A DNA stretch of 64,000 nucleotides from the NCBI GenBank assembly GCA_010909165.1, contig VJWM01000025.1:1426001-1490000 (forward strand), given 5' to 3'. Each line of letters begins with the position of its first letter. Positions within the stretch are counted from its first letter, which is position 1. Positions 1-44,595 of the stretch are shown in pieces. Below the pieces are notes generated by a model. That model made no database searches. It was not told where the DNA came from and saw only the letters and a program-made list of their open reading frames with translations. Source of the DNA: Anthoceros angustus (taxonomy: Eukaryota > Plantae > Anthocerotophyta). The position numbers and the translations under genes are program-made.

Positions 1-10
1 CTACACGCAG

Positions 11-1055
11 TCTTGGGGAGCTCTCTCCATCAGTACACAAGGTCCGCCACTTATTTTAAAGGCCAACAAGGAGTATGCAACCGTGGTAGATGGGCACGTC
101 ATCTTGGGGCGAAAAAGGGATCTGGCTAGAGCCGAAGTAGAGTATGAAGGTTAGTATTTCTGAACCATCTGAATGCGTTTGAATGTCCTGGTTTTCGAGA
201 AGTAGTTGCTAGTAGGATGGCTGCCAAATTTGTAGTATACATCGTTCCTTGCATGCTCTAAGGTTGCACTTGTTGTAGGATCGAAATCAAAAAGCGTCTT
301 GGAACTCCTACAGCTATCTCGCAAGTGCAGGCAGTAGGGTGAGTCAACATGAGTGTTATCCTAATAAAGGTGGAAAGAAAATGGAGAGGTTTGGCAGTGA
401 TTGTGAGCATAGAAGAGGATGACTGCCAAATTTGTAGTATACATTGTTCCTTGCATGCTCTGAGGTTGCACTTGTTGTAGGATCGAAATCAAAAACAGCT
501 TCTGTCGGGAACTCCTACAGCTATCCCCGCAAGTGCAGGCAGTGCAGCGTTTTGCAGTGTTATCCTAATGACAGTGTGGCAGCAGGCAAATGGAGAGGTT
601 TGGCAGTGATTGTGAGCATAGAAGAGGACAGACCTGGTGGAGCTGTCGACCGAGGGCAACTTGAACCTCTTCTCAAGAATTTGAAGTTCCATACTGATAT
701 AGTGGTGAACCAATCTGAGAACGTCAAAGCTTATCTTAGGAGACTTGCCAAGCTCCCTATCCTGGCTAACGACGATTGCTTTCTGTGTTGCATTAATGCT
801 CATGGGGGGATCGATGAAAATGGACGAGATTACATCCTCATAAGTGGAGCAGGTGGGGAGAAGCTATATGTTGATAATGATATCTTGAAGCCCATCTCTG
901 AATCCAGGTATCTTGCAAACAAGCATAAGGTCTTTGTGATCAATGCTTGTCGAGGAAGTGGCAGCCTTATAACAATCAAGAAAGCCGAGGACTCTGAAGT
1001 TGAGAAGAGCCAAGTGGTGAGCAAGAGAGCCGGAGAAGTCCGAGCCCTGTCATGA
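11..1055 (+). CDS. Caspase-like cysteine protease (peptidase C14A-like), 5' part including the large (p20) subunit; gene begins upstream of the window
   Basis: Exon 11-149 is open (SWGALSISTQG...EVEYE). A GT-AG intron 150-480 joins it in frame to exon 481-1055. Caspase motifs in order: RGLAVIV, DRPGGAVD (Arg 630-632), CFLCCINAHG (His 801-803), KHKVFVINACRG (Cys 948-950), then a linker. The ORF stops 7 nt inside the insertion that starts at 1048. Confidence 0.88.
216..629 (+). repeat. Tandem ~200-bp duplication of the caspase intron 3' end plus exon start (copy 1 ~216-420 degenerate, copy 2 ~417-629 intact)
   Basis: Both copies share ggatg(g/a)ctgccaaatttgtagtatacat...ttgttgtag|gatcgaaatcaaaaa...gagcatagaagagga. 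Copy 1 has indels and an in-frame TAG. Confidence 0.9.
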
Positions 1056-1964
1056 TGGGGTCACGCTGTATCGGGATCAGCGATTGTAGCAAGTCCATGT
1101 ACGTAGAGAGAGGATATCGGTAATATCCTAACATATAGAAATGTCATGTATTGTTAGCCATGGGTTTCCAGGTAGGTCGTGACGCAGAATTACCAATCGA
1201 TTTGCTGGATCATAACAAGGAGATTCGCGCGGGAGCTGGTGAGGGTGACTAGACCGGGAAAACACAATCATGGAAAACGATGGAAGGCGATGCATGGCAG
1301 GAGGGAGCAGCGACAGGAGAGCGACAGGCGACTAGGCGCGGGATACAAGAGGCAAGCGTGCTTGGCTTAGGATAGTCTTGAGAGTCTCTTTGAGCCAGAG
1401 GGAGTGACGAGCTCCTGGCCGCTGTAACCGTTAGTGAATGCCGAAAGCTTGCTTGGGAATTTCGAGTGGATGTCCGAGTCTGACATTTGGTTTTGGGTTG
1501 CGGCACTATGCCTGGCTCCTGTTGCGAACTCTCAAACTCACCACGTTCGATCGGCTGATAGACGCTGATTGAATGAGGCATTTTGGATGGGAATTTAGCA
1601 GGATTGTTGCTTTCTTTTTCTAATCAGCTCTCAACCATATGGGCATACGGGTCGTAGTTGAGCTGTTGATCATGACATGGACGCGTTGCGATTGCTATGA
1701 CCAGGGTTGTGCTGGTGTGTGTTGGACATGTCGCGTTGCTGCAAATGCCTGCAGCCGGTTAGTGGTGTCAGCACATGCACAAGCTGTGAGAACAGGAGAT
1801 GTTGTGCTATTCCGATGTCCAGCTGTTTTTGCACGACACCTAAGGTCTTTGTGATCAATGCTTGTCGAGGAAGTGGCAGCCTTATCACAATCAAGAAAGC
1901 CGAGGACTCTGAAGTTGAGAAGAGCCAAGTGGTGAGCAAGAGAGCCGGAGAAGTCCGAGCCCTG
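926..1964 (+). repeat. 124-bp direct duplication (926-1049 and 1841-1964) of the caspase catalytic-Cys/linker region flanking an insertion
   Basis: taaggtctttgtgatcaatgcttgtcgagg...ccgagccctg occurs twice with one synonymous mismatch (ATA/ATC). Confidence 0.97.
1048..1677. mobile_element. Probable solo LTR (630 bp) inserted in the caspase gene
   Basis: Bounded by TG...CA with an 8-bp terminal inverted repeat (TGTCATGA...TCATGACA) and followed directly by TGG (PBS-like position). No coding capacity. The flanks (agccc / tggac) do not form a matching TSD. Confidence 0.65.
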
Positions 1965-2246
1965 CATTCTGTGCGCGATTGTCTCATTGTTTACTCCACC
2001 AGTCATGGACAACGATCCTTCAGAGATACCGAGAAAGGCACAAACTTTATCACAGCTTTTATGGACGCCATCATCGACGGCTCTAAAATGGCAGACGTGT
2101 TGAGCATCTTAACAAGCGTGATGCGCAAGGTCACGGATATGGAGGTCAAACTCGCAAGCGGATCAGGACAGGGCATCGAAAAGAAATTCCAGTGTCCCGA
2201 GTTGTACTCCACCCTCACAAGAGGACTGTACTGGTCTTCACCATAG
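1841..2246 (+). CDS. Caspase-like protease, 3' part (duplicated NACRG plus small p10 subunit)
   Basis: DCLIVYSTSHGQRSFRDTEKGTNFITAF matches the caspase p10 pattern DFL..YST..G..SWR....GSWFI..L (Arg 2022-2024). It is followed by ILTSVMRKV and KKFQCPELYSTLTRGLYW*. The ORF is open from 1707. Confidence 0.88.
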
Positions 2247-3790: not shown

Positions 3791-4723
3791 AGTATATAGG
3801 ATGCTGAATATATCGAGATTAGAGTCATGTCCTTGAGGTTATGCCAAGCCCCAAGGGCTATCCTACACATGTAGGGCTTATGTGCACCATATAATTGTCC
3901 TGTCTAGCTGATATGAGTGAGTGACTAGCTTTACTATTTACCTCAAGCCAGTGGTGCTGTTGTAGACGACATCCATTGCCTCTGCTTCGTGTGTCTGCTA
4001 ACTGTGTTGATCATGTGGCGTAGCTGTGACTGTGATGTTTGTGAGTCCTAACAGCATGGCATTACATTGCATCCATGGAGATAACATGGAGTAGAGTAGA
4101 GGAAAGGGAAATCTTTACAGAAGGAAAATGGAGCATTATTGGCCTCCCCCTTCTCTCTCTCACCTCACCAAGGCAGCCGCAGCCGAGTGTCCGGTTGTGT
4201 GTTTGTACTTTCCCGGCTGCTGAATTATTGGAAGAGGCGTGTTCCGAGGAGTTGGTTTGATGCACGAGGCGGTGTTTGCAGGCAACTCAGGGCCCCACCT
4301 GCTTCGCTCGGAGCTGCCCAGCTGCCTGCGCAGGAGGTGCAGGGATGGCAGCGCCCGCTCCGGGTATCCTGCGCCATGCTGGGTGCTGTCAGGAATGTGG
4401 CTGCCTGTGCTGCTGCCTGTGCTGCTTGTCCCATGGAGCCCATGTCCATCCACCAGCTCTGCCCCCGGTTCCTTCCATGCTCTCCTGCTCTACTAATCTC
4501 TCGTCCATACTCTCCTCCCTCGCATCCCGTTGCTGCCCGGCCCGCCACGTGTCCTCGAAAGTGAAAAACAAATGCGATTTGCTTCCCCACTACGCTAAGG
4601 AACGCTTTTCGTCCCATGTCTCGCAGAAGGCGGGGTGAGGGCGACTCAGCAGCACAGGCAGCACAGGCAGCAGGAAAGCACAAGCAGCATAACTGGGTAG
4701 GAGCACAACCCTCGGCAAGCTTG

Positions 4724-5611
4724 ATGGGGGCCAGTGCTTCATTGCCTGAAGTGGTGTGGAAGACATTCGGAGCCCTGTTGGTGCTGCCCATCCAACACAA
4801 GCTGAGAGTGTTCAGTGTACTGGTGAAGGAACGCGACTCCTTCACGCTGATCGGAGATCTGGGCAGCCTGTGCACCGAAGGGGAGTCGAAGGTGTTTCTG
4901 CAGGACGTCATTGCCCACCAGGAAAAACGCTACATCACGTCCAAGGAGCTGGGATCGATTGACCGTCTGGTGGAGAACGATTCTCGATGGTCCAGCCGGC
5001 TTCTGGCGTTTCAAAATGGTTTTGCTGCGGGGCTCCAAAATGTGGATGCGTGGAGAATCACCGTTCCCGAACACCAGTGGGTATTTGCTGAGGAGGGTAC
5101 TAGTTTGAGGGATCTGTTGAACAAATTTGTCCCTGACGACGGGGATCTCCATTTCAAGAGGGGCAGGACTCTGGATCTGTGGATTGTGACTGAGGTGATC
5201 ACAGCCCCTTCCCTGACCATGTATGCTTTGAATGGGAAAGGAGCTGACATCGGCTTCTCCGTGACCCCTCCTGCTCCCCTGCCGGTACCGGTGGACGTGC
5301 AAATCACCCTCGGAGGAGAGGGCAGGGCAAAGCAGTTCATCTCCATCGCTGGGCCAGAACTGGATGACACAATTCAGCCCTTTCCCTTCGCCTTCAGGGG
5401 GTGGAAATGCACATACAAGAGTGGCTTCTTGAAGAAGTGGAAACCAGCCCGCCTCCAAGCGGACTCGTTTGATGTTCCACCTCTGAATGGAACACCTGAG
5501 AGACCAATCCGCAATGCAAGATGTGCTACCCCTCTGGCGGATCCCGATATGGCGGATTTTGTCGGGGAGGATGACTGGGTCACCACCATCCGGGATCCGG
5601 CAAAGCATTGA
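4724..5611 (+). CDS. Gasdermin-like pore-forming protein (bacterial/fungal type), 295 aa from the MGASAS start; ORF open from 4616
   Basis: Single-exon ORF. Segments FGALLVLP...LRVFSVLV...LIGDL, LWIVTEVITAPSLTM, PFAFRGWKCTYKSGFL and the tail DFVGEDDWV follow, in order and spacing, my recollection of Bradyrhizobium gasdermin (GINLILPP...PGDLII...RLGGW; FFVVTKVWRARGIRI; IFGLTLREVTYKDGAI; AFIGDDAFV). Not confirmed by HMM or structure search. Confidence 0.78.
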   Translation: MGASASLPEVVWKTFGALLVLPIQHKLRVFSVLVKERDSFTLIGDLGSLCTEGESKVFLQDVIAHQEKRYITSKELGSIDRLVENDSRWSSRLLAFQNGFAAGLQNVDAWRITVPEHQWVFAEEGTSLRDLLNKFVPDDGDLHFKRGRTLDLWIVTEVITAPSLTMYALNGKGADIGFSVTPPAPLPVPVDVQITLGGEGRAKQFISIAGPELDDTIQPFPFAFRGWKCTYKSGFLKKWKPARLQADSFDVPPLNGTPERPIRNARCATPLADPDMADFVGEDDWVTTIRDPAKH

Positions 5612-10189: not shown

Positions 10190-10749
10190 CTATTCCTCAT
10201 CCTCGGCCTCGTTGTCGGCGATATTGAAGTATCGCAATTCATACATGTTCCTATCCTTATTGGAGGCTATGACTCGCAGCCAGTCCCTCACGTTGTGCTT
10301 CTTCAAGTACTTCTTCGTCAAGTACTTCAGGTACCTGCAAACAACCACCAGGGGAGTCATTCACATCCGAACAGCAAAGGAATCCCTGACCGCAAAAATA
10401 ACCTAACAGGTCATCCAGCAGAAGGCTCGGTCCGACCTAAAGAGCAGGGGTGCTACCAACAAATTCCAAACCATCGCCAACAGCTAAGGCTGTCAACTAA
10501 CCTCTTCGAGAAAGCAGCCTCGGAGGTGACGCTTATTCTGTTGTTTTGACGTGCGATCGTGACGATGTCGCCCAGGACGCCCGCCTTGCCTCCAACCTTG
10601 ATCCTCTCTTGTAAAAACTTCTCGAAGGAAGCAATGTCCATGATCTTGTCCTCCACAGGCTTCCCGCAGTCGATGGTAAACGTGGAAGCCCTCTTCTTAC
10701 TCTTGGGACCCTGGCCCTTCTTGGCCGCAGCCACAGCAGCCGGCGCCAT
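10190..10749 (-). CDS. RPL22: 60S ribosomal protein L22e
   Basis: Exons 10749-10502 and 10334-10190: [34 protein letters not shown]...FSKR|[47 protein letters not shown]. Confidence 0.98.
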
Positions 10750-11259
10750 CGCTACAACAAACGTGCTGGAAATACGGTATGCGGGACTTCGGTCCAAATA
10801 TATAGGCCTTAGGTTTAGGGATACATATGTACGCTGCTATACTTCCATCCAGGCAAGTACACATACAGACAACAGATGTCTGGATCAGAGCCGCGCTATC
10901 AGTGCCACCCGAGGGGAAATCTGCCAAGGGAATGCGCCTGTTGGCAGATTCAGAAAAAGCGTATCAGGAATCGAGACGTGTGGCAGAAGCCACAGCCGGT
11001 ATGGGCTTGATTTGAGATGAGCGGGAAAGGATGACTCCCTGGTGGAAGGGGCAGCAGAAGCATAGAGGTCCTTTGACTATTGTCGAAGTAGGAAATGATC
11101 TCGTGAAGGAGGTTGTGTAGCGCAATTTGTTTTTCCTTGTGTCTGGAACGAGGATGGAGACCCAGGGCAGGAAACATTGCGAGGTACCATACAGACACTG
11201 CACTATTATTCTAGGTTTCAGGTTATCCATGGCCCGGACGCGCACCTTAAGCTGGAAGC

Positions 11260-12637: not shown

Positions 12638-15600
12638 CTACTTTGGTCTTCCTTTACTCTGGGGATGCTTCTCATCACCAACCATGAAACTATGCACGAG
12701 CCCATCCTTGTCTGTCCACGAGCTCCGACCTGGCTGCTTCCATGCGCTGATTCGCTCTCTCATAGCCTGCATCTTCCGAGCTTGCTCCCACATCTGAGCA
12801 CCCGTGAATATGTTTGACATCAACACGTACGCTGCAGCATCTCTTTCATCTAGCTTAACTGCTTCATTGAAAGCATGGAGTCCCACCTCCACATTGCCCC
12901 ACTTTCGACAAGCACCCAACAGAGTGTGCCAAACAGCACCATTAGGCTGCACAGGCATTGTCCTTACTAGAGCTAGTGCCTCATGCAGATGGCCTGCACG
13001 ACCCAAAAGATCTACCATGCATGTGTAGTGATCCTCTGTGGGAGTAATGCCATTATCTCTGTTCATAGCCTGAAAGGACTCCCACCCCTTGTTGACTAGT
13101 CCCGCATGACTGCACACCGTTAGTAGACTAAGATATGTGATACTGTCCAACGGTAAGCCATCAGCCATCATTCTCTGAACCAGGTCAAAGACCACTTCAC
13201 TGTCTCCTTGACAGGCGTAGCCTGCAATCAGTGCATTCCAAACCACAAAGTCTTTTTCATCCAACACATCAAACACCTGCTGTGCATCGACCATGCTCCC
13301 ACACTTTCCGTACATGTTAATCAAACTGCCTGCTACAAACTGATCACCTTGAAGACCTTGTTCTACAATCTGTGCATGTAGCAGCCTTCCCAGGTATAAA
13401 GCTGCCACATTGGCACATGCCTGCAGGAGGCACACAAATGTTACAGAATCGGGTGCAGCCATGCCTCCTTCCTGCATGGCACTAAAGAGGCGGAGGGCTT
13501 CGTGCTCCATCCTCTGCTGGCAATATCCTGCAATCATGGCATTCCAAGTCACCACATCTTTATGAGCAAGTCCATCAAACACCTTCTTTGCATCTTCCAA
13601 GCTGCCACACTTTGCATACATGGTCACCAAACTGTTGGCTACAAATACATCAGCTTGATGCCCTTGCTTTCTGATTTGGGCATGAAGCTGCTTCCCCTTC
13701 TCCAATGCCAGGGTGCCCACACTAGCACATGCCTGCAGGAGGCACACAAATGTCATGGTATCGGGTACAGCCACGCCTCCTTCTTGCATAGAACTATACA
13801 GACTGAGGGCTTCATGGCCCCTACCCTTCTGAGAATATCCTGCTACCATGGCAGTCCACGTAACCACATTCTTTTCATCAAGTCTGTCGAAAAGTCTCTG
13901 AGCTTCTTCCAAGCTGCCACATTTTGCATACATATTCACCAAACTGCTGGCGACGAACACATCAGCTTGGTGACCACGTTCTCTAATTTCACTGTGAAGT
14001 TGCTTCCCCTTCTCCAACGCTGAGGGACCGACAGATGCACATGCCTGCAAGAGGCAAACAAATGTTACAGAATTGGGTATTGCCATGCCACCTGCTTGCA
14101 TAGCACTGTAAAGGCGGAGGGCTTCCTGCCCCATGCCCCGCTGAGAATATCCTGCTATCATGGCAGTCCACGTCACCACGTCTTTCTGAACAAGTCCGTC
14201 AAACAGTCGCTGGGCGTCTTCTAGACTTCCACACTTTGCATACATGTTCACCAAACTGCTGGATAGAAACGCATCAGCTTGGTATCCTGCTTCCCTAATC
14301 TGTGTATGAAGCTGCTTCCCCTCCTCCAACGCCGGGGTGCCCACACTCGCACATGCCTGCAGGAGGCACAAAAAGGTCACAGAGTTGGGTACAGCTATGC
14401 CTTCGTCTTGCATAGCGCTGTAGAGGCGAAGGGCTTCCTGCCCCATACCCCGCTGAGAATATCCTGCTATCATGGCAGTCCACGTCACCACATTTTTTTC
14501 CTTAAGGCCATCAAACAGCCTCTGGGCGTCTTCCAAGCTGCCACACTTTGCATACATGTTCACTAAACTGTTGGCTACAAAAACATCAGACTGATGTCCT
14601 TGTTCTCTAACCAGGGCATGAAGGTGCTTCCCCTTCTCCAATGCTGGGATGCCGACACTTGCACATGCCTGCAAGAGGCACACGAATGTCACAGCATTGG
14701 GTACAGCCACACCTTCTTCTTCCATGGCACTGTAGAGCCGAAGGGCTTCCTGCCCCATGCCACGCTGAGAGTACCCTGCTATCATGGCAGTCCAGGTCAC
14801 CACATCTTTCCGACCAAGTCCATCAAACAGCCTCTTGGCATCCTCCAAGCTGCCACACTTGGCGTACATGTCCACCAAGCAACTGTACACAAACAGATCA
14901 GGCTCCACGCCAGTGGCCAACACAGCAGCATGAACCTCCTGCCCGGATTTCAGGTCTCCGCCCCTTGCACAAGCCTTCAGAACTGCCACAAACACATAAC
15001 CATCTGCCTTCACATTCGACCGGCACATCCGACGATACAACCCTATGGCCTCCCTCGCTCGCCCCTGCTTCACATGCGCAGAAATAACGGAACCCCACAT
15101 GAAGGCATCTGGCTGGTCAACCACTTCAAACACATCCATCGCGTCTTGCAACCTGCCATTAGAGGCATACAACCGCAAAACATAGTTGCACATGAACATC
15201 TCCGCCTGGTACCCCATCCTCACCATCAAAGCATGCATGCGGATACCCAAAACAAGATCGTTCTCCAATACACATTTCTTCAACACTTCGCAAAACAGTG
15301 CTTTGGAAATACAACCTTCCTTCTGCACCAAAACTCCCAGACCCTCAACAGCCTCAGCGAGGTGGCCATCACAACACAGCCTGTTCACCATCCCAGCTGT
15401 CACAATGCTGTCGTCACCTGCAGGCCTGCGTGGCATCTCCAAATCCAGAGCAGCAAGCTGCGCATCCACCCAGCCCAGCTGGTACAAACTGTTCAACCAG
15501 AGGACCTCCCGGCACTGCCTGTGCCGGAAGTCAGGCACCCAGAGGCTCACCCCATTTTGCCTGCCATCCAAACCAAGTGTAGGGTCCCGATACCCGGACC

Positions 15601-15898
15601 CCCGTCCAGCAAGAAATCCTCTTGGACGGGCTGGCGTTTTTGCAGAGCTGCTGCTGCTGCACCTCCCGACTTGGTTGTGCGCCCACAGATGGTTGCTCGG
15701 AGTCAGGCGACCGGGAGCTCTCCCTATACTCATCGCCAAACCATGACATTGTTGCGACCAGGAAGACGGTCCCCACGACAGGTCAGTGTTGCTGGACTGA
15801 ATTCCAACGCTCCAGACACCCATTTCTCGAAGCTGCACACCCTCAGCTTTCGCATCCGAGCGACCCGGGCATCCCAGATGGATCACTCCGTCAGTCAA
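12638..15898 (-). CDS. PLS-class PPR protein with E1/E2 and a DYW domain truncated after the PG box (organellar RNA-editing specificity factor)
   Basis: About 23 P/L/S motifs (VTWTAMIAGY; VTFVCLLQAC; SLVNMYAKCGSLED), E motifs, then KQPGRSSWTDKDGLVHSFMVGDEKHPQS and a stop. No HxE or CxxC. True start codon uncertain. Confidence 0.95.
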   Translation of the reverse strand: MTDGVIHLGCPGRSDAKAEGVQLREMGVWSVGIQSSNTDLSWGPSSWSQQCHGLAMSIGRAPGRLTPSNHLWAHNQVGRCSSSSSAKTPARPRGFLAGRGSGYRDPTLGLDGRQNGVSLWVPDFRHRQCREVLWLNSLYQLGWVDAQLAALDLEMPRRPAGDDSIVTAGMVNRLCCDGHLAEAVEGLGVLVQKEGCISKALFCEVLKKCVLENDLVLGIRMHALMVRMGYQAEMFMCNYVLRLYASNGRLQDAMDVFEVVDQPDAFMWGSVISAHVKQGRAREAIGLYRRMCRSNVKADGYVFVAVLKACARGGDLKSGQEVHAAVLATGVEPDLFVYSCLVDMYAKCGSLEDAKRLFDGLGRKDVVTWTAMIAGYSQRGMGQEALRLYSAMEEEGVAVPNAVTFVCLLQACASVGIPALEKGKHLHALVREQGHQSDVFVANSLVNMYAKCGSLEDAQRLFDGLKEKNVVTWTAMIAGYSQRGMGQEALRLYSAMQDEGIAVPNSVTFLCLLQACASVGTPALEEGKQLHTQIREAGYQADAFLSSSLVNMYAKCGSLEDAQRLFDGLVQKDVVTWTAMIAGYSQRGMGQEALRLYSAMQAGGMAIPNSVTFVCLLQACASVGPSALEKGKQLHSEIRERGHQADVFVASSLVNMYAKCGSLEEAQRLFDRLDEKNVVTWTAMVAGYSQKGRGHEALSLYSSMQEGGVAVPDTMTFVCLLQACASVGTLALEKGKQLHAQIRKQGHQADVFVANSLVTMYAKCGSLEDAKKVFDGLAHKDVVTWNAMIAGYCQQRMEHEALRLFSAMQEGGMAAPDSVTFVCLLQACANVAALYLGRLLHAQIVEQGLQGDQFVAGSLINMYGKCGSMVDAQQVFDVLDEKDFVVWNALIAGYACQGDSEVVFDLVQRMMADGLPLDSITYLSLLTVCSHAGLVNKGWESFQAMNRDNGITPTEDHYTCMVDLLGRAGHLHEALALVRTMPVQPNGAVWHTLLGACRKWGNVEVGLHAFNEAVKLDERDAAAYVLMSNIFTGAQMWEQARKMQAMRERISAWKQPGRSSWTDKDGLVHSFMVGDEKHPQSKGRPK
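13290..14950 (-). repeat. 312-bp-period intragenic tandem repeat (PLS triplets)
   Basis: The anchor aagctgccaca(c)ttt recurs at 13599, 13911, 14223 (variant), 14535 and 14847, exactly 312 nt apart. Confidence 0.92.
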
Positions 15899-16372
15899 GA
15901 AATAAACTCATACATCTCTTGACACATTGTCGAACTGTTTGTCAAAAATAAGTGGGAGAAGGTCGGGTGGTTATGACGAGGGAAATGCTCCATCTGAATG
16001 GTTGGGTACGACAGATTGCCACCAACCAAGACATCACCGTGGAGATTCCTATCAGTCAGGAACAGCGAGCACACGATTACTGCAAACAACAACGAAAACC
16101 TCAGACAACAAGCTTGCAGGCGGGAAAAATGTGAGACCTACTTTAGTGATGTGGGGAGGAATTTTGTTCGTTGCAAGGGAGTTAGAGGAAGCTTGGGAGA
16201 GAAACTTCGATGCAGCTCCTGGTATGCCGCCTAATCGAAATGAACCAAAATGCGCCTCTAACTTCAGTCCAGAAGCCTGATGCTCCTAGATGTCATCGAA
16301 GGGCCTTACAAGGTCGATCGAGGCAATTCTGTTTGTTATTGCCGTCTGCTTCTCGATCGCAGCGCAAGCATC

Positions 16373-17767
16373 ATGGCTGCACTCAGCTCTGCGTCTGCGG
16401 CCTGCCACCATCTGCATGCGGTCGCCGCATCATCCCGGCGAGAGCTTTCTGCAGTGGAGAATCGCGCCGGGCTGCGCTTGACAACCGTGCAATTTGCAAT
16501 GAAGCCTCTCAAGGTCCCGATCAGACGAGGTTCTGGAGGCCGGATGTTATACGCTAGCGCTAGCGCTAGCCCTAGTTCATCCTTTTCCTCCGAGTCTCCT
16601 TTCCCAGTGGAAGAAGATGAGATCAAGGAGGCTGTGACGGCTGAAGGCCGGCCTGTGAGCCGCTTGTCGCAGGCGGATTTTGTGAAGGAGGCGGTCCGGA
16701 GGCTGTCGCAAGAGGATCTGGAGGTGGCAGTGCGCAAGTACAATTTGGAGGACGAGCTGTTCGCGGAAGTGGATTATGCGCAGGTGAATGCCTTCACTGA
16801 TCGGGCCTTCAGTGGCAACCCGGCTGCGGTGTGCTATCTCCCCTACGCCGACGACTCACGGTGGCTTCAGCTAATTGCTCGAGAATTCAATCTGTCGGAA
16901 ACGGCCTTCGTGGTGAAGCGGCAAGGCTCGAGTCCGGAGGAAGGGCAAGCGGACGAGGATGAGGATGAGGATGAGGAGGAGCCCGTAGCTCCGGAAGAAG
17001 TCATCGACTTCGACCTCCGGTGGTTCACGCCCAGAGTGGAAGTGGATCTGTGCGGCCATGCCACCTTAGCTTCAGCTCACCTTCTGTTTGCTGCGGGCGT
17101 CGTGGAAGGCGACCTCATTCGCTTCCACACCAGATCAGGGATTCTACAAGCCAGAAAGGTGCAGGGATACGACGAATCGGTGGAACAAGGCAAGAAAAGA
17201 CCGTCCGGCAAGGGCGTGGTGGAGCTGGACTTCCCTATTTCAACAGCAACACAAATCGTTGGCGAACAGGTGCGGAAGCTTGCAACCGGGCTGGGGCTTG
17301 AACAGCAGCAGGTGGTTTGGGCTGGAGCCACTAGTCTTGGGGATTTCCTTCTGGAACTGGCGTCCTGGGAGCATGTGGAGGAAGTGAAGCCCATACTACA
17401 TCTGCTGGACGACTTGCCCGGCCGGGGCGGAGTCATCGTCACTTCCCGCGCCAAGCCTGGCAGCGGCTACCACATCGTCTCCCGCTTTTTTTGCCCTAAA
17501 GCTGGCGTCGCTGAAGATCCTGTCACAGGCAGCGCGCATTGCACGCTCGGCTGGTACTGGAGCTCCAAGCTAGGCATAAGCAGTCTGGAAGCCTACCAAG
17601 CGTCGGAGCGTGGCGGCTCCATATCCGTCCGGGTGGACGAGCAGGCCGGCAGAGTGTTTCTCCGAGGGGCTGCCGTCTTGGTCATGGCTGGCGTCATTCT
17701 CAACCCTGTCACCCCGGGGTCAGGGCCGTCTAAAACTGACGACAACTTTCCCTCGGTAGCTACTTAG
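16373..17767 (+). CDS. PhzC/PhzF-family (DAP-epimerase fold) protein with probable plastid transit peptide
   Basis: VNAFTDRAFSGNPAAVC, EFNLSETAF, LRWFTPRVEVDLCGHATLA, SRFFCPKAGVAEDPVTGSAHC, RGG. Ser/Ala/Arg-rich N-terminus. Single exon. Confidence 0.95.
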   Translation: MAALSSASAACHHLHAVAASSRRELSAVENRAGLRLTTVQFAMKPLKVPIRRGSGGRMLYASASASPSSSFSSESPFPVEEDEIKEAVTAEGRPVSRLSQADFVKEAVRRLSQEDLEVAVRKYNLEDELFAEVDYAQVNAFTDRAFSGNPAAVCYLPYADDSRWLQLIAREFNLSETAFVVKRQGSSPEEGQADEDEDEDEEEPVAPEEVIDFDLRWFTPRVEVDLCGHATLASAHLLFAAGVVEGDLIRFHTRSGILQARKVQGYDESVEQGKKRPSGKGVVELDFPISTATQIVGEQVRKLATGLGLEQQQVVWAGATSLGDFLLELASWEHVEEVKPILHLLDDLPGRGGVIVTSRAKPGSGYHIVSRFFCPKAGVAEDPVTGSAHCTLGWYWSSKLGISSLEAYQASERGGSISVRVDEQAGRVFLRGAAVLVMAGVILNPVTPGSGPSKTDDNFPSVAT

Positions 17768-21631: not shown

Positions 21632-24600
21632 CTATGGATACGATGTCAAAGTGATGTCTAACTTCAGAGGACCCGCCCCCTTCCTTACCTCAAATACCTG
21701 TTGCACATCCTCGCCTGCAACTGAGACCGAATATTGTCCTGTAAATCCCCGAAATGCTATCTGTCCCTCAGCATTCGTCACACCACTGGTCTTGGTCAGC
21801 CATTCCTGCTTCAAAGCTAGAAATCGTTTTCCTGCTTCTGTTAGACTGGAGTCCCAATTCACCAGATGAGCACGCTCTCTGGACATGGCACCTTCCCAAA
21901 AGCCCCAGAGAAGGACTCCTTCGACACCTGGATGTGCGTATGCCTCTCTGAGAACCACTTCCAAATCGTCAGCCCTGATGTGCTCGTTTGATGATGCAAC
22001 ATCGACTTCTGTCAACCAAATAGGAAGTCCAGCAGAGCTCAAGACATCGAAGGATTCACGCAAGATGGAGCCCACTGGAGCATCAATGTGGCCCTGGACG
22101 CCAACCCCTCCCACTGTTGCTCCTTGTCTCTGAAGCTTCACTATATGTTCCACATATCTCTGCGCGGAGGAGTTGGCGTCACAGCCATCCTCGACATGGT
22201 AATCATTGACAAACAAGGTTGCATGGGGGTCGAATTGCTTGCACAGCCGGAACATATGTGGAATGATTTCACGGCCAAGTCTGTCTTTGAAGAACGAGCC
22301 ATGTAGCATTTCGTTGTTCACATCATAATGCTTAAACCTTCCCTGATAGCGAGATAACATGTCCTTAATCCGTCTTTGCACAGCATCACGCAAAGCAGGC
22401 TCCGGAAGACACTTCAGCCATTCCTGCACTGTATGTTCCACCTCCCAGAAGATACAATGGCCCCTTACAGGAATGCTATGCTGGGAACAGAAGTCCAGCA
22501 GTTCATCAGCGTCTTTGTAGTTAAGCTTACCCTGGCTGGGTTCAATCCACGTCCATTTCATCTCATTTTCAAATACTGCCCAATTGAACTGCTCCAGAAA
22601 GAACTTCACATAACTAGGGTTGTCGATGTTGTGTCGATTTATACATGAGCCAAGAGGAAAATCGTTACTTGTTTGGAGAACCTGCAATGACCGCGAGGGC
22701 ACAACGCGCCCATATCTGTCTTTGACAGTTAATATGACCTCTCGCTTGCGCACCTGGGTAGGGAATCTCTCAAGGTGTTAGCCCAGAGCGTGAATGAACC
22801 ATTCACCAAATACAAGAGCTGAGATGAGCAATATGAAGCCATTTGCACACCCGAATGAAATAACGTACCGTGTCTGTGCATGCAATTAGTTTTGTCAATC
22901 TCTCCGTTTTGTCCACTGCAAGAATCCGTAAGCCAGCTAACATAACGCTAGTACCAGGAGCTGGACCTTGAACGTACACAACAACCTTCTTGGCTGCGTT
23001 CTCTAACCGAAATGAGCCTCTTACTTCAGTCCAGGACCCTGATGCATCCGCCTGCGTCTCTCCCCCATTTACCCATGCATCGTCCACACTAAGAGCTACA
23101 TTAACCTTCTGGGCTTCAGTTGCAAGACGAAGTCTCACCCAGGCCTTAACTTCGTAAGTGAGGAATAGCCGCACTCTGTCAGTGATGTTCTGTGCTGGAC
23201 CCTCCCAGTAGTGATGTCGTTGTGTGGCAACAACACATTGAGATCCACGTGGTCCTTCACTGGTCACTTCCAGATGACATGACCCAAGAGCATACCAGGA
23301 GGCCAGTCCCTTGGAAAACGTGCTGTTTTCAACAATATTAATTCCATATCTTGGATCCTGTAACAAACACGTCCAAAGTTGCCCTCACCACTCTACTGAC
23401 CACAAAGTGCCCAACACCAACGATCAAGATACGAGATAAAAATGATCATCCCCAGAGCAACGAACATGACATCCAACCTCAAGGACAGGACGATTGGCAG
23501 GAGTTGGTTTCTTTAGGGGACGCATGGAAAAGCTCCGCACACTCATATCAACCCCACTGGGAGGTCCTTCCAAATAGGCTACCGCTTTGCTAGGTAGCTT
23601 GTGGAGAGTCAGCCTTCCCTTCAGCTCAACCCAACCATTTGTTGATGCTTCAGTTCTGCATGTACAGAATATGACACAAGGAGGTAGATGATTGAAAACT
23701 GGAAGAAATGGAGTGTCTAAAAGATGGATTTGAAATGCTCTACCTCCCCATGGAAATATATTGCTCTGCTCCATCCTGATTCACAATATGTAGTGTAGCA
23801 AGCACAGTTGCAGTGTTGACTGATCCATACAGCCTCACGACTGCATTGACATCATACACCACATTTGCTTTGAGGCGCCTAGTGATGTCTTGCTGAATGC
23901 CTTGCCATTCAGCACGGCGACATGATAGGACAACACAGTTGTTTATCCTGGAGAAGGAAGGCTTGCATCCATTGCAGGTCCAGCTTTCCAGTCCATCCTG
24001 AAAATTCCAGTTTTCTAGTATCTCTCCAGTACATACGCTCGGGTCTCCGTCCATATCCTCTTGCTTTTCCGTTGATCTGCTTCTACCCATCGCCGCTTGC
24101 TTCTGCAAAAAGCATCAGATCCATTCCATCAAGCGCCTCATCCCAAGAGTAGCCTTTACCACAGGGTGATGGTGTCATACCACAGCCACAGGCTCTCCAC
24201 TTGCTGGTGTGATGGATAGTCTTGCAAGAAGAAGACACACACCACGAGGCGGACCTTCAACATACACCAATGCCTTTGGCCAGGATGACTCCACCCGGAG
24301 CTTGCCCTTCAGTACCGTCCATTTCCCTGCCGAGACACTCCCCCTGCACAGCCCCACGACTCGTTCAAGCCTGGAAAACTGCAGAGAACTAAGCAAATTG
24401 ATGCACAAATCAGCTTCGGGAAGCACAATACTTTGCCAGCTGGATATACTGCGGTGCCCCGCCGGCAGCAGTGTCGAGCTTCAGGGTCACAAGCACTGGT
24501 ACATCTCCATCCTGTCCCACAGCACTCACCACAGCTTGCAAATCATACTCAACAGACGGCCTCAACCTGTCTTGTATCTCCTGTGAGATGCCCTGCCACG

Positions 24601-36968: not shown

Positions 36969-39900
36969 TTACTGATGACCGTCACATGAACACCAGCCAT
37001 CGACAAAGTGATGGACACGGTGTGCATCTCTAACTATGATCTCGCGCTTCTCAACGCGCGACATGATTTTTGTCCCACTGTGACAGTCATTGCACATGCG
37101 AAGGTTCTTAGTGACTAGCAAGGTCGTGCCATCCGGAGTGTTGAGCAGACCATAAGCCAATGCTAGTTTTTCAGCATGACCACATAACGCATCTTCCTTC
37201 TCTTTCTCAGAGACTGGCTTCAGCACTAATTCTGTATGTGGCACATGGCCCCCTTCTTCCTTCAATTGCAAATTTGAGCTCCTCAGCTTAGAGGAGATGT
37301 CATCCCTTTCCTCCCCCACAATAAAATCCTGGACCTTCCTATCCACCTCAATCCACGCCCTGGCAGGCTTCTTCCAAGCACCTGCAGACCTCCTTAAGCT
37401 TTCAATCCTCTCTACATCGGTCCACCTTCCAGCGTTGGCATACAAATTCGCCAGTAGAACGTAGGCACCAGCATTTTGGGGTTCAAGTCCGGTGAGATGG
37501 TCGAAACATCGCTGGGCACGGTCTATGTCGTTGTGGCTTGCACAGGCAGTGAGCAAGGATGTCCACCCGACAACATCCTTCTCAAAAGGCATACTTAGCA
37601 GGATATTCTCTGCCTCATCCATGCGACCTGCCCGTCCAAGAACGTCGACCATAGATGTATAGTGCAAGACCCCAGGAGCAATGCCATGGTCTTCCACCAT
37701 GCTTTTGAAATACTGTTGAGCCTGTGGTACCAGTGCCTGGTGACTGCATGCCACGAGAAGACATAGGAAAGTAGCATCATTGGGCTCGACCCCTTCCTGT
37801 CGCATCTCCTGAAAACACTGCATTGCCATTTGACTGTCATTGTGTTGGCTGTAGCCATAGAGGAGAGAATTCCATGTCACCACATCTCGCGCGGGCAGCC
37901 TGTCAAACACTCTGCGGGCATCGTCCAAGTTGCCGCATTTGGCGTACATGTCTACCAGGCTGCTTCCAACAGCCACCTCAGTTTCAAGTCTCTGTTTCTC
38001 AATTTCGGAATGAAGTTCCTTACCGTGACCTAAAGCTCCAATGCTGGCACACGCTTTTAAGAGGCACACAAAAGTGACTTGATCAGGAGTAATGCCCTCC
38101 TGTTGCATTAGTTCATAAAGATTAAGCGCCTCTTGGCCAAGTCCATGCTGAGCATATCCTGTAATCATGGCATTCCATGTCACCACATCTTTCGTGGGCA
38201 ACCTGTCAAACACTCGTTGAGCATCCACTAGACTGCTGCACTTAGCATACATGTCCACCAAGCCATTGCCAACCAATAAATTTGCTTCTAGTCCTCTATC
38301 CTGTATCTGTGAATGAAGGTTCTTGCCCTCATGTAGAGCTCCTATACTCGCACACGCTTTGAGGAGGCATGCAAATGTAACATGACTGGCTAGGGCCACA
38401 CCCTCCTGATGCATATTTGCATACAGAGAAAGCGCTTCTTCACTGAGCCCGTGTTGGCAGTATCCTGTAATCATAGCATTCCATGTCACCACATCCCGTT
38501 TTGGCAACCTGTCAAACACATATCGAGCATCCGCCAAGCTTCTACACTTTGCATACATGTCCACCAAGCTGGTACCTAAAACTACATTTTGTTCAAGACC
38601 CTCCTTTCGAATTTGTGCATGGAGCTCCTTGCCCTGACGCAAACATCCAATGCTGGAACATGCTTTCAAAAGACACACCAGTGTAGATTGAGTTGCCTCC
38701 ATTAGGCCGTGCTCTTGCATACACGCATACAGAGTCAGGGCTTCCTGATCAAGGCCGCACTGGACGTAGCCTGCAATCATGGCCCCCCACATCTGTACAT
38801 CTTTGTTTCCTAGCTTATCAAACACACTGCGAGCATCTTCAATGCTGCCACAGTTTGCATACATATCCATCAGACCACTGCTAATAATAGGATCAGCCTC
38901 AAGACCTCTTTCCTTAATCTGAAGATGGAGTTCCTTGCCCTCATTTAACAATCCAGTGCTGGCACATGCTTTCAAAACGCATGCATACGTGATATGATTT
39001 ACTGCAACAGTGGCATCATTTTGCAGACTTTTAAACAAAGACAGGGCCTCTACTCCGCACCCATACTGAGAGTATCCACTGATCAGAGCATTCCATGTCG
39101 CCACGTGCTTTGTAGGCAACTTGTCAAACACCATGTGAGCATCCTCCATGCTTCCACATTTTGCATACATGTCGATCAGGCTATTCCCCAAAATTTCATC
39201 TGTCTCAAGCCCATTATCCTGAATTTCACAGTGAAGCTTCTTGCCCTCACCTAAAGCTCGGATACTGGCACATGCATTGAGGAGGCAAGCATATGTCACC
39301 TGATTGGCTGGAAGCATTGCCTCCTGCTGCATTGAAGTATAGAGAGAGAGAGCCTCCTGACCGAGCCCCTGCTGGGCATAGCCAGCAATCATGGTAGTCC
39401 AAGTTACCACATCATTTGAGGGCAACCTGTCGAATATGCCACGAGCAGCCTCCAGACGACCGCATTTTGAATACATGTCGACAAGGCTACGGCCTATAAC
39501 TACATCACCATCGAGGCCTCTTTCCTGGATTTCCAAATGGAGCTGCTCGCCTTGGTGTAAGGCTCCACTAGTGCCACACGCTTTCAGGAGGGACACAAAT
39601 GTATAGTCATTTGGCGTGGTGACACCTTCCTCTTTCATACTTGAATAAAGAGTCAGTGCTTCTTGAGCAGGACCACAGCAGGCATATCCCCCAATCATTG
39701 CAGTCCACGTTACAACATCTTTAGATGGCAAGTTGTCAAACACATGGCGGGCATCTTTAATACTGCCACATTTCACATACATGTCTACCAGACTGCTTCC
39801 AATTACAACTTCAGCTTCAAGTCCATGTTTCACTATTTGAGAGTGAAGCTCCTTGCCTTCACGCAAAGCTCCGGTGCTGGCACATGCTTTTAGGAGGGAT

Positions 39901-41029
39901 GCATATGTAACATGATTCGCTGGAGTCATGCCATCCTTCTGCATGCTTGCATATAAAGAGAGGGCTTCCTGACAGTGCCCATGCTGAGCATATCCTGCAA
40001 TCATAGAAGTCCATGTGACCACACTTTTGGTCTCTAAACTCTCAAACACTTGGCGTGCATCCCCCAAGCTCCCACATTTTGCGTACATGTCCACCAGAGA
40101 ATTTCCCACAAACGTGTCAGGCTCAATCCTACTCCCTAGCACATCAGCATGGACCTGCTTCCCAGATTCCAAATCTGCTGTACATGCACAAGCCTTGAGG
40201 GCCGTAACAAATACATGATTGTTAGGCTTCACAGAGGACCGTCGCATCTCTTGATATAGTCGTGTTGCCTTCACTGGCTGTCCATGATCAACATGTGCAG
40301 AAATAACGTAGAACCAGGAGAAGGCGTTAGGTGTGGCCAGTTTGGCGAACACCTGCATAGCGTCCTGCAACCTGCCATTGGAAGCATACAGTCGGATGAA
40401 GTGGTTGGCCAAGAACGTTGTACACTCGTACCCACTGTCGAGAGAGAGAGCATGAACCCGTCTGCCAACAATAAGATTCTTCTCCAGGATGCAGCCTTTG
40501 AGCAAACGGTAAAAGGCTGCATCAGGCACATAAGACCCTTGCCCCACCAGGACATGTAAGGCCTCAACAGCCTCATTGAGCTGCCCCTCTTCGCGTGGCT
40601 TGCCCCAATTCCCAACTTCTGACGGACTTGCCACTCTGTACAGGCAGGCGAGTGTCACCACACATTTCTGCACGTTCAGATAGAGCTCGAGGCACAGAGG
40701 AAAGGGGTCTACCTCCCAGACTGCTCATGTCGGCCCGTTGGATAGAAAACAGGAGCATTTGATGCTATAGCAACGCCGACAGTTTGTGCTGTTAGAAGCT
40801 TGCCCTGGACCCAGGCGAGCTGGGAGTCAATCCACAATGCCTCCTTCCCGACTTTGTGCGCTGAATCACCACTCGTGGAATTGAACTCCAGTGTTGTACA
40901 TGGTTCCGCTTCAGCTCGCAAGGACGAAAGGTGTCTCCACCATTTCTCCCCAGCCCTCAGGTGTTTGGATGTGTTTTGAACCAGACTCCCGACAACCAAA
41001 TGGCCCCCAATTTTACCTCCTTTCCTCAT
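36969..41029 (-). CDS. PLS-PPR with full DYW:KP-type domain (candidate U-to-C organellar editing enzyme)
   Basis: About 29 PLS motifs, E1/E2, KKPARAWIEV, HAEKLA, RMCNDCH, C-terminus CSCDGHQ*. The long ORF has no early ATG. A predicted 77-nt GT-AG intron (40712-40636) joins the ATG-41029 ORF in frame. Confidence 0.95.
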
Positions 41030-41625: not shown

Positions 41626-44595
41626 TCAGGGTTCCTCCGGGGAACCCCACAGGCAACGTCTCAGCGAGACCGACAAGTAGTCCATTGCTCCCTGGGGATG
41701 CTGAAATACGAAGCAAGCTCCCACGCACACGGCCAGAACTCCCACCATGGTCATGATGCTACGGGCCCCAATTCTCACATGCTGGTTCGCAAAAGTCGAA
41801 TTCCTGTAGCTATACCTTCTTGTCCGTCTGGATGCCCAAAAGTGCTCCATATCCAGGTCCGAAGCTGCTTTGCTGGAGAGGAATGGCTCCTTCAGGTTTT
41901 CGATATCCACAACACGGTGCCCTGTGTAATTTACGGGAACAACTAAAGCCCCATTCCCGACAGAAGAGGTGGATGCAGCTTTTGCTTCATCACCCTGCCC
42001 AAGAGGTGCACCTCTGTTCCCGATATCTAAGGGCTCGCTTTGCTGAGCGATACCGGAATCAGCAAGCCAACTTCGCAGAATACATTCCCGGACTTTGCTG
42101 ATAGTTGGGTTTTCCAACGCATGAGCACCATCCAGCTGAGCAGGGATGCTGACACCAAAAGACGCTGCAGAAGACAGTATCCGCCCTGCAACCGAAGGGC
42201 AGCCTCCAACCAAAGCGAACCTGAGAAGTCGTCGTAGCCTTATTGCATGCCACTGTCTACCTACAAAGGTGTCAAGTCTGTCCGGGGTGCTGTACCGATC
42301 TGGGTAGCTCAACACCCACCCCAAGTCAAGCAGTAGCGTATGGACCATCCTCCACAGATGGGCAGAATTGGACGCGGAATGCAGCCCAAGCCTGCTCATC
42401 AGTGTCTGCAGCTCAGCGCACACCTCGGCATCGGCGACAAGCAACGGGACATGATTGCTTGTACCATGGTTGTTTTCAAACTCAACATAAACCACCCCAC
42501 ACCTACCCGAGTTCACAGCAGGAATCCTTAGCTCATAAGATGATGTGTCCCCATCCGCTCTATGCATCCCCTGCCCATTTTGACTCCTATCAACAGCAAG
42601 ATATTTTCCCCCGAAAGAGAGAAATGGCCTCACTTCTCCACTACGAAGATTTTTGCCGTGCACTTGCACATTTGTAGACGAGCCAGCCTCCATACACAAT
42701 GGCCACACAAAGTCCAGCTTTGCTAGTTTTTCTCTCAACCCATTGTTGCGTATATCAGTGACATGCCCTTTCAAAACTTCACAAACCTGTTCCCCCAAGC
42801 AGGCAATAAAGTGGCCTGAATCCCAAAAACCCCCCCCTGATCCCTGGACAAGCTTGGCCACATAAGCAGCCCAGTTTGACTCGAGATCATCCCACATCTG
42901 CTGCTCCATGGACAGGAAGAGAGTTAGAATGGTGCAGCCAGATCGAATATATCCCTCTAGTTCCACTGGCATGTTCCCTATCCACTCCAGAATCTGTTGC
43001 CGCAACCTGCGGGGAAAGTCACCAGGATTCCAGTCATAAAGTTTGAAGGATATGCGTCCGGATGGGAAAGGGGAGGAGTAGGTGGGGGCTTTTCTATTCA
43101 GAGCTCTATATGAGGAAGGGTGCTGTTGAAAGAGGATGTCCGCATCGTGTGCGCCAGGGACCTTTGGGTTGGGAAAGAAGTTGTCCCCATGGAGATCGTC
43201 TTCAAGAAGAAAAGACAGCAGCGACTCTTCCTCGAGTCCCGATTTCCCGGGATTGAAGCCAAACTGCTGGCCCGACACTTCCCCAGAGGATGCACCCCAG
43301 TTTCTCGCATTCACTTCACCTGCCATATCATCATAAGGAGGCAGTGCTGTGGCCGCCAAGACCGGGTCCCCAAACACAGAGTTGGGGAAAACATTGGCAG
43401 CATCAACACTAACCCTCCCAGTTTCACTCGAGTGCAACCCTGCTCCCGACGTAGCCGGCTGCAGCTGCGCATCCAGAGTTGGTAATTGCAGACCTAGGGT
43501 ACCCGTGGACTGCGACAGCCCACACATAACCGAGCTCTGAAGAGAGTCCATGCAAGAAGAAACCGTAGTGGTACCACAACATCTGCCAACAGCCGCATCC
43601 ATGGACGACGAGCTGAGAGTGGACGCCAGCTTAAACGCAGGTTCCGAATCCAAAACCCCCGATACCGGTGCCTGCTCCATGGACGCAGAATTCTCCGTCG
43701 CAGGTGACGGGCTAGACTTGTCCTCACCTCCGACCTGACCATCAGGAACCTGGTGCACAGCTCCCTCCCCCGTCCCGGTCTCCCCCGACTCCATCATCTT
43801 CCTCCTCCTCCTCGTGTTATGCCTCTCAAGCTTCCGCCTGCAGCTCCTCTTCTCATCATCAAAATCCGTAAGCTTGTGAAACTTGCCACACTGCTGACAG
43901 TACCGATGAGCCTCCCCTTTGAGCTTCACCGTGATAGCATTAGCGCAGCGAAGACACACCCGGTGCCGCTGATGGTACCCCTTGAGCCTCCCGAGGTCCT
44001 CCCTGCATGCCTCCACCTGACACTTAGCCGTGGCCCTAGTCCGCTTCCGGCTCACCACATCCTCCTCCTCGTCATTGTCCGTGCACCCGCACGGCGTCCT
44101 CACCCCCGCCGCGTTGGGACACGCATCCTGCTTGCCCCCCGACATGCTGGACAACTGCTCTGTGACATCCGGAGACTGGCTCTCCTCCGCCTCCACACTG
44201 CCGCGACTCGGGACCGCAACCTCCAGCCCCGCCTTGCTCTTCCCTCCTGCTGCACCACCCCAACCCTCCCGCACATGAGCGCACACACATGCACATACAT
44301 CGAAGACATGCAGATTCCACATCCTCCAACACTTACCCCGTCCTGGTCCCCGCGCCCGCTTGCCAGCCGCCACGGCGCCATTCCTGTTCCGATTCCCGCT
44401 CCCGCTGCCATCTCCATCTCCAGCTCCGCCCTCGCTCTCCACATCCACATCCGCATCCACAACCACGACCGCATCGGGGCGCGAGTTGGCCACCAGCTGC
44501 ACGCTGTCCCAGTCCCAGAGCTCCCCTAGACTGGTGCCGTCGTCGATGATGCCACCGGCTTCCCGGTGGCAATCGGCCATGGAATTCATAAACAT
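41626..44595 (-). CDS. SPL7: SBP-box transcription factor, SPL7/CRR1 type; single exon
   Basis: CQVEAC...YHQRHRVCLRCANA...YCQQCGKFH...SCRRKLERHNTRRRRK (C4 first finger), ISFKLYDWNPGDFPRRLRQQI, IRSGC, C-terminal hydrophobic segment. First in-frame ATG is 44595. Confidence 0.93.
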   Translation of the reverse strand: MFMNSMADCHREAGGIIDDGTSLGELWDWDSVQLVANSRPDAVVVVDADVDVESEGGAGDGDGSGSGNRNRNGAVAAGKRARGPGRGKCWRMWNLHVFDVCACVCAHVREGWGGAAGGKSKAGLEVAVPSRGSVEAEESQSPDVTEQLSSMSGGKQDACPNAAGVRTPCGCTDNDEEEDVVSRKRTRATAKCQVEACREDLGRLKGYHQRHRVCLRCANAITVKLKGEAHRYCQQCGKFHKLTDFDDEKRSCRRKLERHNTRRRRKMMESGETGTGEGAVHQVPDGQVGGEDKSSPSPATENSASMEQAPVSGVLDSEPAFKLASTLSSSSMDAAVGRCCGTTTVSSCMDSLQSSVMCGLSQSTGTLGLQLPTLDAQLQPATSGAGLHSSETGRVSVDAANVFPNSVFGDPVLAATALPPYDDMAGEVNARNWGASSGEVSGQQFGFNPGKSGLEEESLLSFLLEDDLHGDNFFPNPKVPGAHDADILFQQHPSSYRALNRKAPTYSSPFPSGRISFKLYDWNPGDFPRRLRQQILEWIGNMPVELEGYIRSGCTILTLFLSMEQQMWDDLESNWAAYVAKLVQGSGGGFWDSGHFIACLGEQVCEVLKGHVTDIRNNGLREKLAKLDFVWPLCMEAGSSTNVQVHGKNLRSGEVRPFLSFGGKYLAVDRSQNGQGMHRADGDTSSYELRIPAVNSGRCGVVYVEFENNHGTSNHVPLLVADAEVCAELQTLMSRLGLHSASNSAHLWRMVHTLLLDLGWVLSYPDRYSTPDRLDTFVGRQWHAIRLRRLLRFALVGGCPSVAGRILSSAASFGVSIPAQLDGAHALENPTISKVRECILRSWLADSGIAQQSEPLDIGNRGAPLGQGDEAKAASTSSVGNGALVVPVNYTGHRVVDIENLKEPFLSSKAASDLDMEHFWASRRTRRYSYRNSTFANQHVRIGARSIMTMVGVLAVCVGACFVFQHPQGAMDYLSVSLRRCLWGSPEEP

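Follow-up and report, generated by a model that had tools for sequence, protein, structure and literature searches.

An invariant aspartate marks a candidate activation site in a predicted short-tailed plant gasdermin

We analysed a 64,000-nucleotide stretch of Anthoceros angustus DNA (contig VJWM01000025.1 of assembly GCA_010909165.1, positions 1,426,001 to 1,490,000, forward strand; hereafter the window), which holds a gene for a gasdermin-like protein downstream of a caspase-domain gene (Table 1). We tentatively propose that this protein would be activated by an Asp-specific, caspase-type protease cutting after Asp247, at LQAD247/S (a slash marks a cut; P1 and P1' are the residues before and after it). 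This site is the best candidate because an invariant Asp is followed by a small P1' residue, because the site lies in a predicted disordered stretch, and because the S1 pocket of the linked protease family is of the Arg-Arg type. A first-pass annotation of the same DNA had placed candidate cuts after the second Asp of two DxxD motifs, at DSFD/V and DMAD/F. In our alignments, conservation falls on the first Asp of either motif (D247 and D275), a shift in register by three residues.

Table 1. Coordinates of features in the window (positions from 1 to 64,000)
Feature	Position	Strand	Remarks
Gasdermin-like gene	4724..5611	+	295 amino acids (aa) from Met 4724, intronless; open reading frame (ORF) 4616-5611
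Pore-forming gasdermin fold	4736..5452	+	residues about 5-243, from structural alignment
Proposed activation site L-Q-A-D-S	5453..5467	+	candidate cut after Asp247 (codon 5462-5464), P1' Ser248; predicted local distance difference test (pLDDT) <50
DSFD, first motif of the first-pass annotation	5462..5473	+	P1 Asp250 (5471-5473) not conserved; P1' Val, then Pro-Pro
Variable linker	5474..5539	+	residues 251-272; length and composition different in every relative; pLDDT 31-43
Conserved C-terminal motif DPDMADFVGEDDWVTTIR	5540..5593	+	presumed autoinhibitory; holds DMAD (5546-5557) and ADPD275 (codon 5546-5548)
Peptidase_C14 domain	444..2246	+	2.5 kb upstream of the gasdermin; Pfam 1e-13 and 2.4e-18
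PPR-E/PPR-DYW editing-factor genes and SBP-box gene	12638-15898, 36969-40673, 41626-44736	-	

An invariant aspartate just past the fold

An exhaustive HMMER search of 1.8 billion representatives returned five true relatives only (P0001 to P0005; E values from 1e-9 to 3e-6; 23-28% identity in the family alignment), all of them single uninterrupted ORFs. The sixth match of this search, P0006, was rejected as a repeat-protein false hit. A word-index homologue search gave no match with the single protein, and two family alignments gave P0002 only, among the matches listed. The exact gasdermin sequence is absent from the protein collection searched, a metagenome locus scan yielded no confirmed relative in a collection that seemingly lacks even the contigs of P0005, and tblastn of the relatives' loci found no further gasdermin copies, nor caspases beyond the one at locus L002 that is described below. 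We aligned the family as six sequences (alignment A1) and, in three further MAFFT modes, as seven, with P0007 added.

Fifteen columns of the family are invariant, and D247 is the sole polar residue among them. The Asp is present in 6/6 sequences, or 7/7 with P0007, and its column stays invariant under all alignment modes tried. Q245 and A246, which precede it, are each kept in 5/6, and the residue that follows, at position 248, reads S, G, G, S, S and A. A search with the regular expression [QR][AF]D found exactly one match per protein, 10-14 residues past an invariant Gly. As a control, each tail was shuffled and re-aligned; an invariant Asp followed by an all-small column appeared in 0 of 300 trials.

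The two P1 residues named by the first-pass annotation behave differently. Translation of the ORF bears out both DxxD motifs, with Val after the first and FVGEDDWV after the second, as well as the predicted products of 45 aa (4.96 kDa) and 17 aa (1.99 kDa). The conservation check proposed in that annotation went against both P1 residues: the relatives have A, S, S, S, S and G at D250, and A, A, P, D, D and G at D278, with Asp only in P0004 and P0007. Nor are two DxxD motifs above chance in an Asp-rich tail (P = 0.26), as shuffles of the last 54 residues (15% Asp) contain 1.0 such motif on average and at least two in 26% of cases. Mutating D250 and D278 alone would probably have given a false negative. 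The residues kept around the second motif are D273 (5/6), D275 (4/6, with Asn and His in two relatives), M276 (5/6), F279 (invariant), and W285 (4/6).

The position of D247 relative to the fold was taken from an AlphaFold2 model built from alignment A1 (pLDDT 63.8; predicted template modelling score, pTM, 0.66); a model from the single sequence reached a pLDDT of 32 and was not usable. Cleaved or pore structures (bacterial gasdermin, bGSDM, 8sl0 and 9a84; TrichoGSDM, GSDME, GSDMA3, and GSDMB) align to residues 5/6 to 243/244 of the model, in which the last strand of the fold spans 235-241. Both DxxD motifs thus lie after the core domain, as the first-pass annotation had stated. Residues 243-284 have a pLDDT below 50 and are predicted to be a disordered linker, so that D247 stands 3-4 residues past the pore-forming fold on a segment predicted to be flexible. 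A flexible position and a small P1' residue coincide at D247/S; at D250/V, D275/M, and D278/F the P1' residue is not small.

In the linker of this protein, VPPLNGTPERPIRNARCATPLA, one residue is acidic and three are basic. The idea that the linker had adapted to an Asp-specific protease therefore survives only in part: going by the alignment, such adaptation is not visible in linker composition and appears only as the invariant D247 and a semi-conserved D-x-D at the linker end, whereas the named P1 residues vary and the register was off by three. Beyond the linker lies an 18-residue acidic-aromatic motif, for which the model shows a helix (274-280) and a strand (286-290). The structural alignment over the full length reaches the C-terminal tail of bGSDM (3..292 versus 4..266). 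The plant protein ends soon after the motif, and the relatives are 40-60 residues longer.

With bGSDM as the precedent, we suggest the following sequence of events. The gasdermin would be kept inactive by its acidic-aromatic tail motif, folded back on the core, until an Asp-specific caspase-type protease cut after D247. The active enzyme would be an intact paralogue of the window caspase, since the adjacent copy is broken. The products would be a 48-residue tail (5.3 kDa) that carries the D-x-D-M-A-x-F...W motif and a 27 kDa pore-forming fragment. A cut at any point from residue 244 to 275 would suffice to release the tail.

Gene model and gasdermin identity

The listed ORF runs from 4616 to 5611 on the forward strand and encodes 331 aa (C-terminal sequence KKWKPARLQADSFDVPPLNGTPERPIRNARCATPLADPDMADFVGEDDWVTTIRDPAKH). 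The start codon is almost certainly Met 4724 (MGASAS), because M1 and G2 are invariant in the family alignment, because contigs carrying P0004 start near its MG codon, and because positions 4614-4657 (44 nt, including ATG 4616) are missing from contigs of runs X1 and X2. All five relatives begin with MG and align from residue 1, and ATG 4616 was rejected as the start on these grounds. The P0004 contigs (L009, L010, and L011, from three runs) share their first base, which lies 19 nt ahead of the MG codon. This shared start resembles a transcript 5' end and suggests that the relative is expressed.

A Met-Gly start combined with Ser at position 6 matches the classical pattern for N-myristoylation. 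The Met-Gly start is found in 6/6 proteins and Ser6 in 5/6, and the plant gasdermin is probably N-myristoylated, judging from this motif. It has no Cys near the N-terminus and so lacks the Cys3 palmitoylation feature of bGSDM, which the myristoylation-type start would replace.

Sequence searches detect the gasdermin relationship faintly. Pfam reports no domain in the ORF at E up to 1, and the PADLOC bGSDM model matches weakly (E = 1.9e-5, over residues 183-276 of the 331-aa ORF). Against the PDB, phmmer with the single gasdermin protein gave no match, and a family profile ranked bGSDM first, at an E of only 0.3. In language-model features, the protein falls among fungal hypothetical proteins and Bact_GSDM clusters, and its nearest neighbours are Ascomycota clusters. 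The predicted structure gives a clearer answer. Foldseek matched the model to bGSDM 7n51, 7n50, and 7n52 (E from 1e-7 to 7e-6, probability 1.0). VIA-align gave Z scores of 12.4, 11.8, and 11.7 against three bGSDM structures, the highest for Vitiosangium bGSDM over 227 residues (model 3-292 versus chain 4-266), and Z scores of 8-10.7 for TrichoGSDM, GSDME, GSDMB, GSDMD, GSDMA3, and RCD-1. The Bact_GSDM cluster also ranked first in an Atlas shape search. Because of these Foldseek, VIA-align, and Atlas matches, we regard the assignment of ORF 4724-5611 as a genuine short-tailed gasdermin as sound, at the level of a structural model. The first-pass reading of a gasdermin with a short tail is supported by PADLOC, Foldseek, and VIA-align, and the tail has a conserved aromatic motif. 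A tblastn search found no second gasdermin copy in the 64-kb window.

The linked caspase and the alternatives

The protease gene upstream is of the animal-caspase type. Its top 60 matches and all 17 PDB matches are animal caspases (best solved relatives: caspases 6, 3, 7, 8, and 2), with no metacaspase or paracaspase among them. His of NAHGG and Cys of NACRG align with the caspase catalytic dyad. With Arg179/Gln283/Arg341 (caspase-1 numbering) as the reference for the S1 pocket, Arg of EDRPGGAVD aligns with R260 of caspase-8, an S1 Arg, and Arg of SFRD with R220 of caspase-6, the second S1 Arg. An S1 pocket of the Arg-Arg type predicts an acidic P1, and the type of the window caspase thus predicts a preference for acidic P1 residues.

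The inter-subunit linker of this caspase contains K-A-E-D-S at 1896-1910 (and at 981-995), which HMMER aligns with DVVD-N of human caspase-6, an autoprocessing site of that enzyme (DVVD/N). KAED/S may be an Asp-directed autoprocessing site that resembles QAD/S of the gasdermin. We also observed a tandem duplication of ~205 bp at 214-628, which lies just before the caspase domain and reaches into it (214-293 = 416-495, 96% identical; 379-419 = 588-628, 100%).

Linkage of the relatives to sensor and caspase-family genes recurs. A stand-alone C14 gene, 33% identical to the window caspase, is found at a distance of 6 kb from P0005, which itself lies between NB-ARC-LRR(-ARM) genes, and P0001 is tail to tail with an LRR-ARM gene. 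From their sequences, both C14 genes seen next to a gasdermin gene, the one near P0005 and the window caspase, look inactive.

Several observations weigh against a caspase cut after D247. Invariance alone is weak in acid-rich tails, because shuffled tails give an invariant Asp column in 28% of trials, and the conservation of D247 rests on six (seven) sequences. P4 Leu244 abuts the folded core, where caspase access may be tight, and the model docks the tail onto the core with low confidence only (pLDDT 43-52). On the protease side, the S1 Gln is replaced by Asn in the window caspase. The C14 protein beside P0005 (L002:2895-3722) has Tyr for the catalytic His (FASAYD versus INAHGG) and Gln for the second S1 Arg, and by its sequence is probably a pseudo-protease. 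The window caspase itself is broken by a 915-bp insertion/duplication after 1049, with a stop at 1053-1055; a duplication of 124-147 nt (903-1049 = 1818-1964, 92% identical) surrounds ~770 nt of unrelated DNA. With this insertion and the premature stop, the adjacent caspase in its present form cannot be the active enzyme. The earlier suggestion of an Asp-specific protease such as the neighbouring one is therefore supported as to the type of enzyme, an animal-type caspase with both S1 Arg residues, and not as to this copy.

Other copies are likely to exist. In a contig of run X1 (354 nt, 94% identical, 22 mismatches), position 923 is followed directly by 1839 and the insertion is missing. Splicing of the insertion was rejected, as this join, the only one found, has CA..CA borders rather than GT..AG and the contig carries 22 mismatches; by its sequence, this contig is a paralogue with an uninterrupted caspase and not spliced RNA. 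Run X1 is moreover only guessed to be RNA, a further point against the proposal. In run X2, which is DNA-like, the summed contig depth reaches 150-220 in the caspase region, compared with about 12-35 for the gasdermin and about 10-24 for the insertion. Caspase-region depth is ~10 times that of the gasdermin, and the caspase domain is thus a multi-copy family and the gasdermin low-copy. Given this copy number and the insertion-free contig (94% identical), the genome probably contains intact caspase paralogues. Contigs of three runs contained caspase paralogues and no usable paralogue sequence of the gasdermin tail.

We weighed four other accounts against a cut after D247. The activating protease may lack Asp specificity, for example a metacaspase cutting after Arg243 (KPAR/L) or another linker Arg/Lys, or a subtilase as for HET-Q1, with the QAD motif serving folding, oligomerisation, or docking. 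Both adjacent caspase-like genes look dead, R243 is kept in 4/6 sequences, and HET-Q1 is cut after Phe and Runella bGSDM after Leu, so that an Asp is not required for gasdermin activation; plants are moreover stated to have metacaspases and no caspases (PMC12521494). However, the linker has no invariant basic residue, and Arg266, which the first-pass annotation had named as an example of a cut that would refute its sites (NAR/C), aligns with acidic residues in the relatives. A small residue follows the Asp that is the sole invariant polar residue of the family, the S1 pocket of the linked proteases is of the Arg-Arg type, and no other protease gene was found among the large ORFs of the window. 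We consider this account unlikely. An account without any proteolytic activation, in which either the protein works uncleaved, a behaviour reported for TrichoGSDM and RCD-1, or the locus is what is left of a decaying module with a dead protease, strikes us as less likely still. The disrupted and partly duplicated neighbour, the shorter C-terminus relative to the family, and the fact that the gene was not found in any run recorded as RNA would fit it; set against these are an intact ORF that keeps all 15 family-invariant residues, the probable intact caspase copies, and the pairing of a conserved tail motif with an invariant Asp, which points to a regulated, autoinhibited protein.

Two further accounts keep an Asp-specific protease and move the cut. 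Cleavage after Asp275 (ADPD/M), alone or as a second site to D247, would release a 20-residue peptide of 2.3 kDa, matching the ~20-aa inhibitory peptide of bGSDM, which is cut just before the peptide, and it would draw on the partial conservation of D273 and D275. Yet Asn or His replaces D275 in two relatives, its P1' is Met (Leu in P0003), and the tail is acid-rich in most relatives, where an aligned Asp is less telling; these acidic residues may instead cap the modelled helix 274-280 or pair with basic core residues. We rate D275 as a weaker candidate and an improbable sole answer or second site. Least probable of all, in our view, are activating cuts after Asp250 and/or Asp278 as first annotated. 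DMAD resembles DMPD of human GSDME, both sites lie in the low-confidence stretch past the fold, and D278 recurs in P0004 and P0007. Both also fit DxxD, the consensus that caspase-3/7 recognise in GSDME (PMC10942788). Against them stand the variable P1 residues, a motif count at chance level, and P1' positions taken by Val-Pro-Pro or Phe; a cut at D278/F would also fall inside the conserved tail motif, beside an invariant Phe that is probably buried on the core.

Known gasdermins, genomic setting, and significance

Three characterised systems come closest to the one proposed here, and the first is that of the bacterial gasdermins. In Runella, a Roc-COR-CHAT protease cleaves bGSDM at residue 247, within the loop that precedes the C-terminal peptide, and a ~20-aa peptide with Phe/aromatic anchors keeps the bGSDM core inactive. 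The plant protein shares with the Runella, Bradyrhizobium, and Vitiosangium proteins (7n50, 7n51, and 7n52) the full-length fold (Foldseek E 1e-7, Z 11.7-12.4), the size (about 250-300 aa), a short C-terminal peptide with presumed aromatic anchors in place of a large repressor domain, linkage to a caspase-family protease gene, and, if the candidate is right, a cut near 247 in the linear sequence. It differs in its low identity (11-17%), lack of a Pfam match, and weak PADLOC match, in an MG myristoylation motif instead of the palmitoylated Cys3, in a candidate P1 Asp instead of Leu, and in a 25-residue variable linker between the candidate cut site and the tail motif. Its host is a land plant, and the linked protease is nearest to animal caspases rather than CHAT.

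With animal GSDME and GSDMD (DMPD/G and FLTD/G), the protein has in common the gasdermin N-domain fold (Z 8-10), a candidate P1 Asp that precedes a small P1' residue and lies in a predicted disordered segment past the N-domain, and a protease with the caspase-type Arg-Arg S1 pocket. Unlike them, it has no C-terminal repressor domain of ~200 aa, and its candidate site lies 3-4 instead of 25-35 residues past the fold. The site is a predicted one and is not a DxxD motif, as the family has Leu, Phe, Thr, Ser, or Tyr at P4 instead of Asp. Fungal HET-Q1/HET-Q2 offers a third comparison: HET-Q1 is likewise a short gasdermin that loses a tail of about 5 kDa, its gene is linked to that of its protease, and Ascomycota clusters are nearest to the plant protein in language-model features. 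HET-Q2, however, belongs to the subtilisin-like serine proteases and cuts after Phe (F238/A239 in HET-Q1), whereas the plant gene is linked to a caspase and the protein has a conserved Asp.

The window is plant nuclear DNA, with genes for PPR-E and PPR-DYW editing factors, an SBP-box protein, an ABCG transporter, and RPL22e. Because PPR-E/PPR-DYW and SBP-box genes lie in the same window, the gasdermin does not come from a contaminant contig. Elsewhere in the window, two long uninterrupted ORFs of this plant genome encode a PhzF-like domain (16280-17767, E = 2e-68) and a GH10 xylanase domain (21632-22753, E = 6e-48), and an intronless ORF at 10453-10797 on the reverse strand has a Ribosomal_L22e domain (E = 5e-21) and no ATG in the listed ORF; by these features, it may be a retrocopy.

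The gasdermin-protease logic itself is already known. What would be new is the host kingdom, the myristoylation-type N-terminus, an Asp-type site in a short-tailed gasdermin, and the family-wide Q-A-D-small signature; our literature search found no paper naming a plant gasdermin. The broadest reading, which we hold as possible and rather doubtful, is a plant pyroptosis-type module: an N-myristoylated short gasdermin with an acidic-aromatic tail, opened at a family-wide Q-A-D/S/G/A site by a genuine Asp-specific caspase that is linked or fused to Roco/NLR-type sensors. On the same doubtful reading, the module would occur in one land-plant lineage and at least two other plant-like lineages, known from transcriptome or metagenome contigs. 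An MG start, Q-A-D-small past the fold, and a D-x-D-M-A-x-F...W tail together give a signature for finding further members. The candidate P1 Asp247 makes a plant pyroptosis-like pathway testable by one mutant. If the broadest reading is true, plants, which are said to lack both partners, would possess a caspase-gasdermin axis.

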